A DNA stretch of 64,000 nucleotides from Zancudomyces culisetae HAW-14-8 (lineage: Eukaryota; Fungi; Kickxellomycota): contig JBNJNM010000007.1 of the NCBI GenBank assembly GCA_052426225.1, positions 930,001 through 994,000 on the forward strand, in the 5' to 3' direction. Positions within the stretch are counted from its first letter, which is position 1; each line of letters opens with the position of its first letter. Of the stretch, positions 1 to 5,990 are shown piece by piece. A model generated the notes under the pieces. It worked only from the letters and a program-made list of their open reading frames with translations. It made no database searches and was not told the origin of the DNA. The position numbers and the translations under genes are program-made.

Positions 1-581
1 TTGTAGTAAGCGAAATACAAAAGAACCCGACCGTTTATACCGAAGTGGTATTGGGATCACCACCAGCCAAGTATTGCGAATGGATAACTCGGGCTACAAG
101 TTGGGGAGGAGCAATAGAGCTAAGTATTTTTAGCAGCTATTTCGAGATGGAGATGGTATCTATCGATATAAAGACTTTGCGAATGGATAGGTTTGGCGAG
201 GGTAAGCAGTACAAAAAACGGGCGTATGTGTTGTATAGCGGGATTCATTATGACACAATTGTGGTTGAGCCAATGAGCTCGGCCAAATTGATTCGTAAAC
301 AAGGCAGCAGTGTGGTGGGAGCCAATATTAGTGGATTTGGAGTAACTAGTAATACTATGGCATTGGCACAACAGAAAACAGTATTTGACATTACAGGAAT
401 AGACCGTGTTCATCAACTAGTTGCTGAATTGGCAAAGTTGATACAAAATGATTTTGGATATACAGATACGGCTGGGTTTAAAATACGATGTTCGATATGT
501 AACAAGATATTATACGGAGAGAAAGATGCCAATGCGCATATGAAGGAAAGTGGACACCACCAGTTTGAGGAAATTAAATGA
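1..581 (+). CDS. OTU1: OTU-family deubiquitinase Otu1/YOD1, 3' part (5' end outside window)
   Basis: Frame is open from the window start. It has WGGAIEL and YSGIHYD (OTU catalytic His region) and a C-terminal C2H2 finger CSIC...HMKESGH. Confidence 0.9.
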   Translation, partial: VVSEIQKNPTVYTEVVLGSPPAKYCEWITRATSWGGAIELSIFSSYFEMEMVSIDIKTLRMDRFGEGKQYKKRAYVLYSGIHYDTIVVEPMSSAKLIRKQGSSVVGANISGFGVTSNTMALAQQKTVFDITGIDRVHQLVAELAKLIQNDFGYTDTAGFKIRCSICNKILYGEKDANAHMKESGHHQFEEIK

Positions 582-1120
582 AGTAGTATAGGGTTATTGC
601 ATGAAGTTTGAATTGTTATTTTTTATAGTTTGTATCTTGGGAGGAGAGTGGACATTTTGAAAAACAATGGGATCACTTCATTTTTTTTTTGTAAAGTATG
701 AAATATGAATATACAAAAGTAAATACCAAAAATGAGATTTAGCGGGGTAACTAGAATATGAAAAAAGGATGGTATAAGAATAAAAAGATGTCGGATAGGA
801 TGACAGGGGGGATTCTTTTAGTATTTTTCATTTTTTTTGGTTACAGGAAAAGGCTGACAGTTCCAGATATATTGAAATTTGGTACTAAAATACTAGAAAA
901 TACCAAAAAATGAAATGAAATAATATAAAATAGTGAGAAATAAAGTAACATTGAAATATAACAGCCAATATCACAAAGATTACAAAATATTGAAAAGTCT
1001 AAAAGCAAGTTCATCAAAATAAATAGAATAAGGCTATTTTTTTTTTCTTTTCGTTTTTTTTTAAAAAAAGGAGCAAAGACCAACATTTCTCAAATACAAG
1101 GACAAATAAAGTAAAATAAA

Positions 1121-2334
1121 ATGTCAACGGATCCGTTCATTATAGTAAAAGAGTAAGCCAAACAAAGTACAAATTTACCTATTAACAATGTCGATATATA
1201 TATATATATATATATTTGCATTTTGACACTGGAAAAGAATGAAAAATATATAAAGAGCAAATGAATGTGAATTAATGAAAAGTGTTGCAAAAAAAAAATA
1301 AAGGGATGTGGAACAAGCGATGGAGCAGGCAGGGGAAATCATGGCGCAGTGGGAAAAGAAACGGCGGGCAAGGGGTAGCCAAGGAGTTCAGCAGTTGGGG
1401 AGTGAATTGGTATATTTAAAGGAAGAATTTAGTCAAATATATGATTCGGTTAAACAAGACTTGATAGATTTACAAAGTACAATAGATAAGTATCTATTCT
1501 TGGTTACCCTAATATTTTAATAATGTATATTCAAGTGAGTGAGAGTGAGAGTGAAACTTTGAACTGGGGTTTGGGAATTGGTAATATAAAAAGTTGGATA
1601 TTTAAAATACAGGTGGCAAAGAAACAGCCGGAAAAGTATGGATTGAATAAACAGAGCTTAAAGCAGAGAGAAAAGTTTGTATCAGGAACTAGGGATAAGC
1701 TAGAGGTAAGAAAAGAAAAGAAAAGAAAAGAAAAGAAACATGAAAAAAGCTAGATTGAAAAAATATATATGAGGATTGTATATAGGATGTAGGAGAGGAG
1801 TAAATATACTTTTGGATATTTTAAATATTATTAGAGCTATATGGAGAGAATGCGGATATTTGATGACAAGAGTCAGGTAAATAAACAACTAGTATGCTAA
1901 TAATAATAATTATACAAAGGTTGGTGAATATAAAATAAAATACGTTGAAAAAAAATAAATAGAGGATAGAAATACAAAGTCAAGATACAAGAGAGAGCAT
2001 TACACGATATGGGTACAATAACGAAAACGGCGACCAAGTAGGGGTGATGCAACATCAGTTAATAATGGAGCAGCAAGACCAACAGTTGGATTCGGTGATG
2101 GGGACGGTGCGTAATTTACGGGGGATTGCACAGGTGATGAATGTAGAGCTGGGGGATCACAATGAGTTGTTGGGGGAGATGGATGGGTTGGTGGATAATG
2201 CGCAGGAGCGGATTCGTCGGGCGAGGAGTAAAGTAGGGGAGTTTTTGAATCGGAGTTCGGAAAACCATCCGCTAAAGATGATTGGAATACTTTTGGTATT
2301 GATTATAGTGTTGATCATGTTGATTCTTGTTTAG
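1121..2334 (+). CDS. TLG1: Qc-SNARE syntaxin-6/Tlg1, spliced: ~1121-1152, 1304-1485, 1611-1705, 1835-1876, 1963-2334
   Basis: N-terminus MSTDPFIIVKE, Habc helices, SNARE motif (EQQDQQLDSVMGTVRNLR...ELGDHNELL) and C-terminal TM. Introns 1, 3 and 4 are GT-AG and keep frame. Intron 2 is best explained as AT-AC (see findings). Confidence 0.85.
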
Positions 2335-2591
2335 ATTATTTTATATTTTATTTTGTTTAAAAAGAATGGTAGAGAAATGGAGAGAAAAAAAAAGAAAAAA
2401 AAGAAAAAAAAGAAAAAGAGTAGAAACAAACGATACTTTTTTTTCTTTGTTGTAGTGTAATTTTTGGATTTAGTTATTATCAAAAGGAATAATATACAAA
2501 TAAACAAGTTGATGAATATAAACAGATCAAGATAAAAGTGAATAAAGGATAAAGAATAAAGGATAAATGATAAATGGTATTGATGTTGGTA

Positions 2592-3820
2592 TTAAAAATC
2601 GATTTTAGATTTATGGAGTTGAAAAGAGGGAGTTAACCAAGACCCACAGCTGCATCTACAACCAGCCCAACTGAACTGACCAAGTTTAAAGGAACAGTGG
2701 GGACAGAGTAATTTTCCAGAAGTTTCGGAGGATAAAGGTAGCCAGGAAGGAGGTTGATCAAGAATGATACTGGTGCAAGAGGATGAAGGTTTTGGATGGG
2801 GTGGGTGGATTGAGAGATTTGGGATTTTAGGATTTGGATATGATAGAATCAATTTTCTACAAGACTTGCAACGTAATCTACAAATCATTTGCTGTTCTTG
2901 TTGTTGTTGCTGTTGCTGCTGATGTTGCTGCTGATGTTGCTGCTGTTGTTGTTGATCTTTTTGTTGTGATAAAGGTGCTAGAGATAGTGAAAGTAAATGT
3001 GAAGTGAAATACTCTGGAGTCTTTTCCAACAAGGCAATATAATTAAGATACATTTGATTAGAGTTGATATTTGTTGATGATACACCCATTTTATAAAACA
3101 AATCAAGTTGGTAAATAAACCCATCGTTTGGCATTGGCATAGATACTGATACTGGCAATGGTGCTGATATGTCTGTAGTTGTAGTTGTAGTTGTGTTTGG
3201 TTCGAGATTATTGGACTTCAACAAACAAGAATATGCTGCTTGAGGTGAACAATTGTGGGTACGCATGTAGTGAGCCAAGGCTATTGTAACAGATCTGCTA
3301 GTTCCAGCAACACAATGAATCAATACATTTCCATTTCCATTTCCATTTCCATTTTCATTTTGAGTTGGAGTTGGAGTTTGTTGGTTTATAAACAAACTAG
3401 CAGGTTCAAAGTATTGTAATATATCGCTTGTAGGTAAATCGTCGACATTAAGAACTAGATACTCGAATTCCTAATATTAACATTGACAAAAGTATTTATA
3501 TATTGTTTTACAATTTTAAAAGTGTATCTTTTGATTAAACTAAAATAAAAGATAGGCAAGACTTTACAGTTGGAAAAGATGGAGTAAAACCATTGATAAC
3601 TGAAATTATTCGTTTGATATTGTGTTCAAGTAACCAGGTACGATCAGCTTCATGGTTGATACTATTTTTTATTTATTATTTATTTATTTTAGTTTGTGAT
3701 TTAAAAAAATAAAATAAAAAAGTTTTTGGGGGGGAAAAGGGAGGGGGGGGTATTATATTGAATATTTCAATTGTGTACTTACGTTCCTATATAAATACCA
3801 TCTAGTTTTAAGCAACTCAT
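2592..3820 (-). CDS. YVH1: Dual-specificity phosphatase Yvh1/DUSP12, exons ~3820-3783, 3661-3568, 3470-2592
   Basis: PTP loop HCVAGTSRS, VDD acid loop, and C-terminal Zn domain CKSCR...CPHC...WAGCRCSCGSW. Two GT-AG introns restore frame from the ATG at 3820. Confidence 0.9.
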
Positions 3821-4034
3821 TTTATTAAACACTTTTAATATTAATGATTGTATATAATATATTATATATATATTTTAATATATGTGTAAATATTTATTTA
3901 GTATAATAGATCAAAGTAATATAATAAAATGTAAAAATAAGAGAATATTTAAAAAAGTAAAAAAATTTTTTTTTATAACTGAAAAAGAGAAAAGAGAAAA
4001 GAGAAAAGAGAAAAGTGAAATAGATGATTGATAA

Positions 4035-5990
4035 TTAATGTAATTTAATGATTTTACCAATGGCAATAGTTTTACCTTCATCACGAAGAGTAAAACGACC
4101 AAGTTGAGGATAATCCTTGAAACGTTCAACACAAATAACACCAGTAGAATTAGCACTAGTAGAGTTGGAAGAAGGAGCAGAAGAAGGAGCAGAAGCAGAG
4201 GTAGAGGTAGAATTGGAAATAAAAGCATCAGCATTGGCACTACTGGTAAGAGTGGCAATACAAGACTGACCACGCTTGACAAAGGTAGGAGGAACCCTGG
4301 ATTTTTTATTAGGGTTTTTCTTGTCGAGCAAGTGCAAAAAGCGGACAATGGAGACTTCTTCGACTAGGTTATGAACGTGGAGGACAGAAGTATAGCCGGG
4401 AGCAATGATGTTTTTGGCATCGAGAATAAAGAGCTGGGCATCGAAATGAACAGCAGTACTACAAGGGTTCTTGGGATCAGACAAAACATTGCCCAAGCTA
4501 ATGTCTTCTTCTTCAACGCCACGCAGACGAATACGAACATTGTCACCACAAATGGCAGACTCAATCTCACCGTCGTCTTCGCCAAAGATTGCAGACACTT
4601 CACAGTTGCGTTTGTTGGGCATAATTACCAGTTTCTGGCCAATCTTGACAAATCCAGACTCGATTTTGCCGCCAACCACTGTTCCCATATCCTTAAACTT
4701 GTCGGAAATCGGCATGCGCAATGGAGCATTGACTTTACGGTCAACTGCAGTCAGTCCATCAAGAACCTCGAGAAGAGAAGGTCCAGAATACCACGGAGCA
4801 ACACCTGCAGCTAGGCGGTCCTTAACGTTTGCGCCTGTGTATCCAGAGACAGGAAGGAAGATCAAATCGGTTTTGGGATTGTAGCCAGCTGTCCTGAGGA
4901 ACGGTGTCAGCTTGGCTAGAATATCAGCATACCGACCTTGGTCCCATTGGACAGTAGGATCGTCCATCTTGTTTATAACAACAATCAGCTGTCGCACTCC
5001 ACTAGTCTTTGCCAAAATAGCATGCTCTCGTGTCTGGCCGCCTCTATCAAACCCGGTTTCAAACTCTCCTCGTCGCGCACTAATCACCAACACTCCTACA
5101 TCGGCCTGTGCCGCTCCTCCCAACATACTTGGCACAAAGTTCTTGTGGCCTGGTGCATCTAGTATCGTATATCGTCGCTTTTCTGTTTCAAAGAATGCTC
5201 GCCCACATTCCACCGTCTTTCCCTTGGCTCGCTCTTCGGAATTTGTATCCAGTGCCCAACTGAGGTACCAGCTTTCTCTTCCTGCATCCTTGGCTTCTCG
5301 CTCGTACTTTTCCATTGTTCGCTTGTCTACCATTCCCGTCAAAAACAATATGTTTCCTCCCAATGTCGACTTTCCTGCATCTACGTGTCCAATAAAGATT
5401 ACATTGAAATGCTCCTTGAAATGCGCATTTAGTAGCTGCTCTTCCTCTTCTGTACTAAGTTGTGGTGTTTCCGGTACCACTACTGCTGCCGAAGTTGAAG
5501 CTGGTGCTGGTGCTGGAGTTGGAGCTGATGCTGCAGGTGGTGTACTTGTAGTTGCTGGTGCTGGTGCTGCTGCTGCTGCTTTTGGTGCTGGCACTGCTGT
5601 TACAGTTGGTGTTGGTACTACTTTTGGTTCCACAGTTGCAGTTGCAGTTGCAGCTTCATTTGGATTTGAATTTGAATTTGCATCAGAAGCTGTGTTAGGA
5701 GCTGTAGATGGTTTAATTGATAATGATATAGATACTGGTTGTGTAGTTGCTGGTGGTGGTGGAGGTGGTGGGGGTTGGGTTTTGTTTATAGTTGCTCCTA
5801 CTCCAAACCCTCGAGGAACAAAGGCTGGTGCTTGTGATCTTAATCCAATTGGTTTAAATTCGGAAGCTTTTGGATTGAGTCGTAGTTTTTGGTCCAGTTT
5901 TTTATCCAATTGTTCCAATCCTCCTCCCTTTTTGCCACTATCTAGGGCCATTTCATCTATAAATTTACTTGTCTTTTTGCTTGGATCCAT
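4035..5990 (-). CDS. SUP35: Translation release factor eRF3 (Sup35/GSPT)
   Basis: GHVDAGKST, SWYLSWALD, DAPGH, NKMD motifs and C-terminal PQLGRFTLRDEGKTIAIGK. Intronless. Confidence 0.97.
   Translation of the reverse strand: MDPSKKTSKFIDEMALDSGKKGGGLEQLDKKLDQKLRLNPKASEFKPIGLRSQAPAFVPRGFGVGATINKTQPPPPPPPPATTQPVSISLSIKPSTAPNTASDANSNSNPNEAATATATVEPKVVPTPTVTAVPAPKAAAAAPAPATTSTPPAASAPTPAPAPASTSAAVVVPETPQLSTEEEEQLLNAHFKEHFNVIFIGHVDAGKSTLGGNILFLTGMVDKRTMEKYEREAKDAGRESWYLSWALDTNSEERAKGKTVECGRAFFETEKRRYTILDAPGHKNFVPSMLGGAAQADVGVLVISARRGEFETGFDRGGQTREHAILAKTSGVRQLIVVINKMDDPTVQWDQGRYADILAKLTPFLRTAGYNPKTDLIFLPVSGYTGANVKDRLAAGVAPWYSGPSLLEVLDGLTAVDRKVNAPLRMPISDKFKDMGTVVGGKIESGFVKIGQKLVIMPNKRNCEVSAIFGEDDGEIESAICGDNVRIRLRGVEEEDISLGNVLSDPKNPCSTAVHFDAQLFILDAKNIIAPGYTSVLHVHNLVEEVSIVRFLHLLDKKNPNKKSRVPPTFVKRGQSCIATLTSSANADAFISNSTSTSASAPSSAPSSNSTSANSTGVICVERFKDYPQLGRFTLRDEGKTIAIGKIIKLH

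Follow-up and report, generated by a model that had tools for sequence, protein, structure and literature searches.

Gene structure of the syntaxin-6/TLG1 locus

The window that we analyzed is a 64,000-nucleotide stretch of the Zancudomyces culisetae HAW-14-8 genome (positions 930001-994000 of contig 7, C7; whole genome 27,093,596 bases in 25 contigs). Near its start, at 1121-2334 (+), lies a syntaxin-6/TLG1 gene whose five open exons sum to 240 codons plus a stop. Exon-by-exon profile searches placed the Pfam domain STX6_10_61_N on exons 2 and 3, as two halves that each score under the whole-protein cut-off, and the SNARE domain on exon 5. Together, STX6_10_61_N, a Qc-SNARE and a C-terminal membrane anchor identify the protein as a member of the Syntaxin 6/10/Tlg1 family; its best relatives carry the names Syntaxin-10/Tlg1, and the closest are Harpellales proteins. 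Profile searches turned up no second clear STX6_10_61_N gene in the genome; the SNARE exon, used as a word-search query, gave no match. The gene is laid out as follows:

1121..1152 (+): exon 1, start codon, MSTDPF...
1153..1303 (+): intron 1, GT-AG, phase 2, A-rich 3' end
1304..1485 (+): exon 2, Habc helices, Pfam STX6_10_61_N positions 9-64
1486..1610 (+): putative 125-nt intron 2 in phase 1, with AT-AC ends and a U2-type donor; orthologous to the STX6 U12 AT-AC intron
1483..1491 (+): 5' splice site of intron 2, TAG/ATAAGT; 7/9 Watson-Crick pairs with the 5' end of the species' own U1, 3/7 matches to the U12 donor consensus
1608..1610 (+): 3' splice site of intron 2, TAC, followed by an out-of-frame AG at 1611-1612
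1611..1705 (+): exon 3, Pfam STX6_10_61_N positions 66-95
1706..1834 (+): intron 3, GT-AG, phase 0; position matches fungal orthologues
1835..1876 (+): exon 4, 14 codons, SYMERMRIF...; resembles a short exon in Smittium
1877..1962 (+): intron 4, GT-AG, phase 0
1963..2334 (+): exon 5, Qc-SNARE domain, transmembrane tail, stop

Introns 1 and 3 agree in position with those of fungal orthologues, and the exon 1 start with its phase-2 intron is common to Smittium, Mycoemilia, Thamnocephalis, Mortierella, Rhizophagus, and Martensiomyces. All four introns (window 1153-1962) have A-rich 3' ends, without a pyrimidine tract and without a CTRAY branch motif. The genes for OTU1, STX6, a YVH1-like dual-specificity phosphatase, and eRF3 adjoin one another both in the window (45-5990) and in Smittium, with the order and strand of OTU1 and eRF3 not the same in the two. 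The YVH1-like phosphatase also adjoins STX6 in Coemansia, Mycoemilia, and Martensiomyces.

Boundaries of intron 2

Translation through unspliced intron 2 meets a stop at nt 1518. The initial annotation had proposed an AT-AC intron at 1486-1610, and our coordinates and letters agree with it: the junctions read ATAG/ATAAGTATCT ... TTTAAAATAC/AGGTG, enclosing 125 nt in phase 1 with a GC content of 0.29. It had also described the product as gap-free against syntaxin-6, as we find, with Pfam positions 9-64 followed by 66-95 and one residue between. When the pieces were aligned separately, exactly one residue separated exon 2 from exon 3 (read from 1613) in 66 of 70 alignable homologues; the four exceptions include two gene models shown or inferred to be mis-spliced at the site and one that reads the intron donor through. 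Removal of 1486-1610 supplies this residue, as G+AG = Glu.

The obvious pairing of GT at 1490 with CAG at 1612 had been called out of frame, and it is indeed missing from the list of in-frame pairs. That list, however, holds eight GT-AG pairs, and not the single alternative claimed by the initial annotation. Donor 1490 gives 1490-1593 (+7 aa) and 1490-1656 (-14), and donor 1503 can be joined to acceptors at 1612, 1621, 1627, 1636, 1654, and 1663; an additional GA-AG pair, 1485-1612, is also in frame (-1 aa). It is conceivable that the mRNA is made mainly with a nearby canonical or GA-AG pair (1503-1627, 1503-1612, 1490-1593, or 1485-1612), with the AT-AC ends left over as a relic. All of these pairs keep the frame, a CAG lies two bases beyond the AC, and 1503-1627 preserves length. 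Yet 1503-1627 turns E-VAKKQ into D-KYLFL where relatives show D/E-VAK, and as a group these pairs alter or delete the VAK motif or change the length of the helix, against the pattern in 66/70 homologues. Their donors form 2-5 of 9 pairs with U1, compared with 7/9 for TAG/ATAAGT, which equals the best GT donor of the gene.

The orthologues bear on the same choice. In three relatives, an intron with the same ends lies at the same base and in the same phase:

L007:2767-2815: Smittium angustum, 49 nt, AG/ATAAGT...TAC/AT, phase 1
L008:1988-2090: Smittium megazygosporum, 103 nt, AG/ATAAGT...TAC/AA, phase 1
L011:1783-1869: Mycoemilia scoparia, 87 nt, CA/ATAAGT...TAC/AT, phase 1

The relatives share the AT-AC pair, whereas the alternative pairs are common to none of the orthologues. 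S. angustum has ATAAGT...TAC but no in-frame GT-AG or GC-AG pair within 8 residues of homologue length. The four ATAAGT introns are identical at their first six and last three bases, but their bodies vary in both sequence and length, which is the pattern that selection on splice sites gives. Based on intron composition, the chance of ATAAGT...TAC at the ends of a given intron is about 2e-5; the combination occurs in three further species, and these occurrences are not independent events. In all seven of the seven intron-bearing species, AT-AC is the sole option that restores homologue length. Altogether, these comparisons make it very probable that intron 2 is real as an AT-AC intron, and the use of a nearby pair is very unlikely. 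S. angustum, S. megazygosporum, and Mycoemilia offer no counterpart to the GA-AG pair 1485-1612, which was rejected on that ground. An assembly error or a dead gene is extremely improbable given that the same ends occur in three independently assembled relatives, that all five exons are open, and that this is the one clear gene of its family in the genome.

Intron 2 carries U2-type signals

The AT and AC terminal dinucleotides are assigned by homology and from orthologues, and the donor is of U2 type. The donor, ATAAGT, equals the U2 consensus apart from position +1, with G at +5, and is the consensus donor of known U2-type AT-AC introns (PMC5029451). Where a U12 donor would read RTATCCTT, intron 2 has ATAAGTAT, with 3/7 matches at +2 to +8. 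No CCTTRAC is found in the last 50 nt, and neither a U12 nor a CTRAY branch motif in the last 45 nt. Both the departure from the U12 donor consensus and the missing U12 branch site had been noted in the initial annotation, and both are borne out here. A TCCTTRAC branch site 10-40 nt before the acceptor, absent from intron 2, occurs in the orthologues of three outgroups. The four ATAAGT introns (Z. culisetae, S. angustum, S. megazygosporum, and Mycoemilia) all lack a U12 branch site.

Splicing machinery of the genome

An RNA search of the genome found U1, U2, U4, and U6 in one copy each (80-117 bits, E 1e-19 to 1e-23), with a canonical U1 5' end and U6 ACAGAGA box. The single U1 gene (L006:1501-1512) starts TT-ACTTACCTGG, not AT-ACTTACCTGG; its donor-pairing part is canonical. 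None of U11, U12, U4atac, and U6atac, the set that marks a host of U12-type introns, appeared in the genome at E<=1 among the best 41-50 RNA candidates scored. The catalytic core is common to U6 and U6atac, and a pattern for it has one match in the genome, U6.

The initial annotation had proposed a genome search for minor snRNAs and minor-spliceosome proteins, and on the protein side the Pfam domains of 25K, 48K, CENATAC, and SCNM1 have no match in the genome, where the 48K and SCNM1 models are short and genes split into exons can escape them. These searches for minor components covered this genome only, with no control eukaryote of known minor spliceosome. DIM1 is a single gene without a second copy, and a zf-U1 search returned U1-C and one unrelated finger. 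A CRIPT gene is present at G000:C15:65695-65918 (+); CRIPT belongs to the minor B-act complex in human (PMC11039992). A combined U12 donor-plus-branch pattern gave 61 genome matches against 37 in the control, an excess due to repeats; about half of the matches are copies of two repeats.

These data also bear on a second explanation, which accepts the AT-AC intron but has it removed by a minor spliceosome, diverged or hybrid, whose snRNAs were missed and whose donor consensus has moved to ATAAGT. In Physarum, the minor system has been reshaped. Such a system would fit the retention of CRIPT, an RNA search that scores top candidates only, the divergence of the genome (BUSCO 71.9%; PMC12611240), and the poor handling of AT-AC ends by the mammalian major spliceosome (PMC7367187). 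It is nonetheless very unlikely. The same search that recovered 4/4 major snRNAs at 80-117 bits recovered 0/4 minor ones, the catalytic-core pattern matches U6 alone, and the searches gave neither a second DIM1 nor any of the four minor proteins. Moreover, the donor fits the species' own U1 as well as the best GT donor does (7/9), and the U12 branch site is found in 0/4 ATAAGT introns.

Ancestral, converted, and lost states among orthologues

The initial annotation had suggested aligning intron positions with STX6 orthologues, which we did on fungal genes. Three outgroup orthologues have a U12-type AT-AC intron at the site:

L012:874-951: Thamnocephalis (Zoopagomycotina), AT-AC, ATATCCTT donor 7/7 at +2 to +8, branch CCTTGAC
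L015:873-953: Neoconidiobolus (Entomophthoromycotina), AT-AC, ATATCCTT donor 7/7, branch CATTAAC
Rhizophagus (Mucoromycota): AT-AC at the same base, ATATCCTT donor 7/7, branch CCTTAAC

Intron 2 thus shares codon and phase with the U12 AT-AC introns of Thamnocephalis, Neoconidiobolus, and Rhizophagus, and the GenBank protein of Rhizophagus is consistent with AT-AC splicing. The gene model of the chytrid Quaeritorhiza has H-I-L at the intron 2 site, which may be the ATATCCTT donor read through in translation. The minor-class status that the initial annotation gave for the human STX6 intron is in print: a published table lists intron 2 of human STX6 and intron 1 of fly Syx6 as U12 AT-AC (PMC2831892). 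U12-type introns in Thamnocephalis, Neoconidiobolus, Rhizophagus, human, and fly indicate that the U12 AT-AC state is ancestral and ATAAGT derived.

In five of the sampled fungi, intron 2 has been lost precisely:

Smittium culicis: intron 2 gone, reads I-D-V
Martensiomyces: intron 2 gone, reads I-D-V
Ramicandelaber: intron 2 gone, reads I-D-I
Mortierella: intron 2 gone, reads V-K-A
Coemansia biformis: whole gene intronless

The converted lineage includes Harpellales and Spiromycetales, and the other Kickxellomycotina are without the intron. Published trees differ in where they place Spiromycetales, either as the sister group of Harpellales or as that of Kickxellales (PMC9866270). The simplest reading is one conversion in or below the common ancestor of Harpellales and Spiromycetales, with two conversions as the alternative.

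The exon base at -1 (window 1485) is G, in an Asp/Glu codon, in Harpellales and in the intronless Kickxellomycotina; Mycoemilia has A, and the outgroups with the U12 intron have A or C. A bias toward G at -1 has been reported for converting introns, and the pattern at this site fits it (PMC11347168).

Probable direct conversion to the major spliceosome

Based on these sequence comparisons, we consider it highly probable that intron 2 is an ancient U12 AT-AC intron that was converted directly, retaining its AT-AC ends, and is now spliced by the major (U2) machinery. Of the two possibilities raised in the initial annotation, this supports an ancestral U12 AT-AC intron now read by the U2 spliceosome over a divergent minor spliceosome. 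In sequence, the donor changed from ATATCC to ATAAGT (+4 T>A, +5 C>G, and +6 C>T) and the intron lost its U12 branch site, with the ends unchanged.

From known splicing chemistry, U1 would pair with -2, -1, and +2 to +6, and the mismatch at +1 would be tolerated because these pairs offset it. The U6 ACAGAGA box would read +4 to +6. For the second step, the first A and the last C of the intron would form a non-Watson-Crick pair, as G and G do in ordinary introns. A single change at either end would break this A-C pair and so trap the intron as AT-AC, with precise loss as the only exit; five of the sampled fungi (S. culicis, Coemansia biformis, Martensiomyces, Ramicandelaber, and Mortierella) show such a loss. 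Direct conversion would have let the gene survive the loss of the minor spliceosome.

Relation to known AT-AC introns

U2-type AT-AC introns are a known but rare class, with 15 in human, 6 in mouse, 3 in fly, and none in C. elegans or Arabidopsis. Examples of this class (AT-AC type II) come from TAF2 and from sodium channel genes, SCN4A and SCN5A among them (Sheth et al. 2006, PMC1557818), and use of the major spliceosome has been shown experimentally for the SCN4A and SCN5A introns. Like the SCN4A/SCN5A/TAF2 introns, intron 2 has AT-AC ends and an ATAAGT donor, lacks U12 signals, and would be a substrate of the major spliceosome. The sodium channel and TAF2 introns, however, sit in animals with both spliceosomes, and two origins have been put forward for them: Sheth et al. 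regard them as relic U2 introns and Lin et al. as converts, with no U12 orthologue cited (PMC1557818, PMC2831892). For intron 2, by contrast, the direction of change can be read from fungal orthologues that have a U12 AT-AC intron at the same base, and the host seems to be without a minor spliceosome.

Intron 2 shares its gene family and AT-AC ends with the U12 introns of human STX6 (intron 2) and Drosophila Syx6 (intron 1) (PMC2831892), and for human the intron number is also 2; the human likeness rests on published intron number and class, the base-level match being to fungal orthologues. Unlike these U12 introns, intron 2 has an ATAAGT donor instead of ATATCCTT and no TCCTTAAC branch site. 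Nor does it follow the GT-AG route for U12-to-U2 conversion, attributed to Burge et al. 1998 as cited in PMC2831892; all 87 converted introns in U12DB end in GT-AG (PMC2831892). It resembles such conversions in that an intron at a conserved position switched class and +5 went from C to G, but its ends never switched to GT-AG. Lin et al. 2010 proposed a rare direct pathway for the sodium-channel cases with the same +4/+5/+6 changes (PMC2831892), and the three changes in intron 2 are those predicted, which supports direct conversion.

Among fungi, the nested AT-AC intron of yeast RPL30 (PMC5029451) is spliced in a host without a minor spliceosome, as intron 2 would be. That intron, however, accounts for 1-2% of transcripts and has neither an ATAAGT donor nor U12 ancestry, whereas intron 2 is shared by two orders and the normal protein appears to depend on its splicing. 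In the literature searched, which omits most subscription journals, we found no report of a U2-type AT-AC intron with U12 orthologues, nor of intron 2 of this gene as a converted intron. Intron 2 looks like a traceable natural case of the direct route, which in that literature has been proposed but not demonstrated.

Extent in the genome and implications

A genome-wide scan for other ATAAGT...AC introns, proposed in the initial annotation, was run over the whole genome as a donor-acceptor pattern (AG/ATAAGT...W6YAC), and its 171 matches against 319 in the control represent no enrichment. In a coding-potential screen of 234 kb, which took in the window plus loci and about 25 distinct candidates, the STX6 intron was picked up again, and it was the sole convincing case. 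At two other known AT-AC sites, in prohibitin and the Na/H-exchanger, the matches are intronless. An Rsm1/NIPA-like gene at G000:C15:630618-631080 (+) has its zf-C3HC domain in two exons about 175 nt apart; the literature searched held no paper on ZC3HC1 as a minor-intron gene.

It is possible, at somewhat below an even chance, that Harpellales-Spiromycetales lost the minor spliceosome and that several ancestral U12 AT-AC introns, that of STX6 and perhaps those of Rsm1/NIPA and other genes, survived there by becoming obligatory introns of the U2-type AT-AC class, the major spliceosome being efficient on A-C ends. If true, this would be the first clade-wide record of a direct route from AT-AC U12 to AT-AC U2. 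What becomes of AT-AC introns after a minor spliceosome is lost is a standing question, for which the accepted fates are loss, sliding, or a prior switch to GT-AG. Here, a single fungal phylum shows the ancestral, converted, and lost states at the same site, and a minor spliceosome does not follow from AT-AC ends. Z. culisetae can be cultured and a transcriptome exists (PMC12611240); therefore, both splicing efficiency and U1 dependence are testable.

Public gene models are wrong at intron 2 in most of these fungi. GenBank models for S. angustum, S. megazygosporum, Mycoemilia, Thamnocephalis, and Neoconidiobolus are in error at the AT-AC intron, with a skipped exon, a missed start, dropped residues, or the donor read through, and the Furculomyces and Quaeritorhiza proteins have the same sort of defect.
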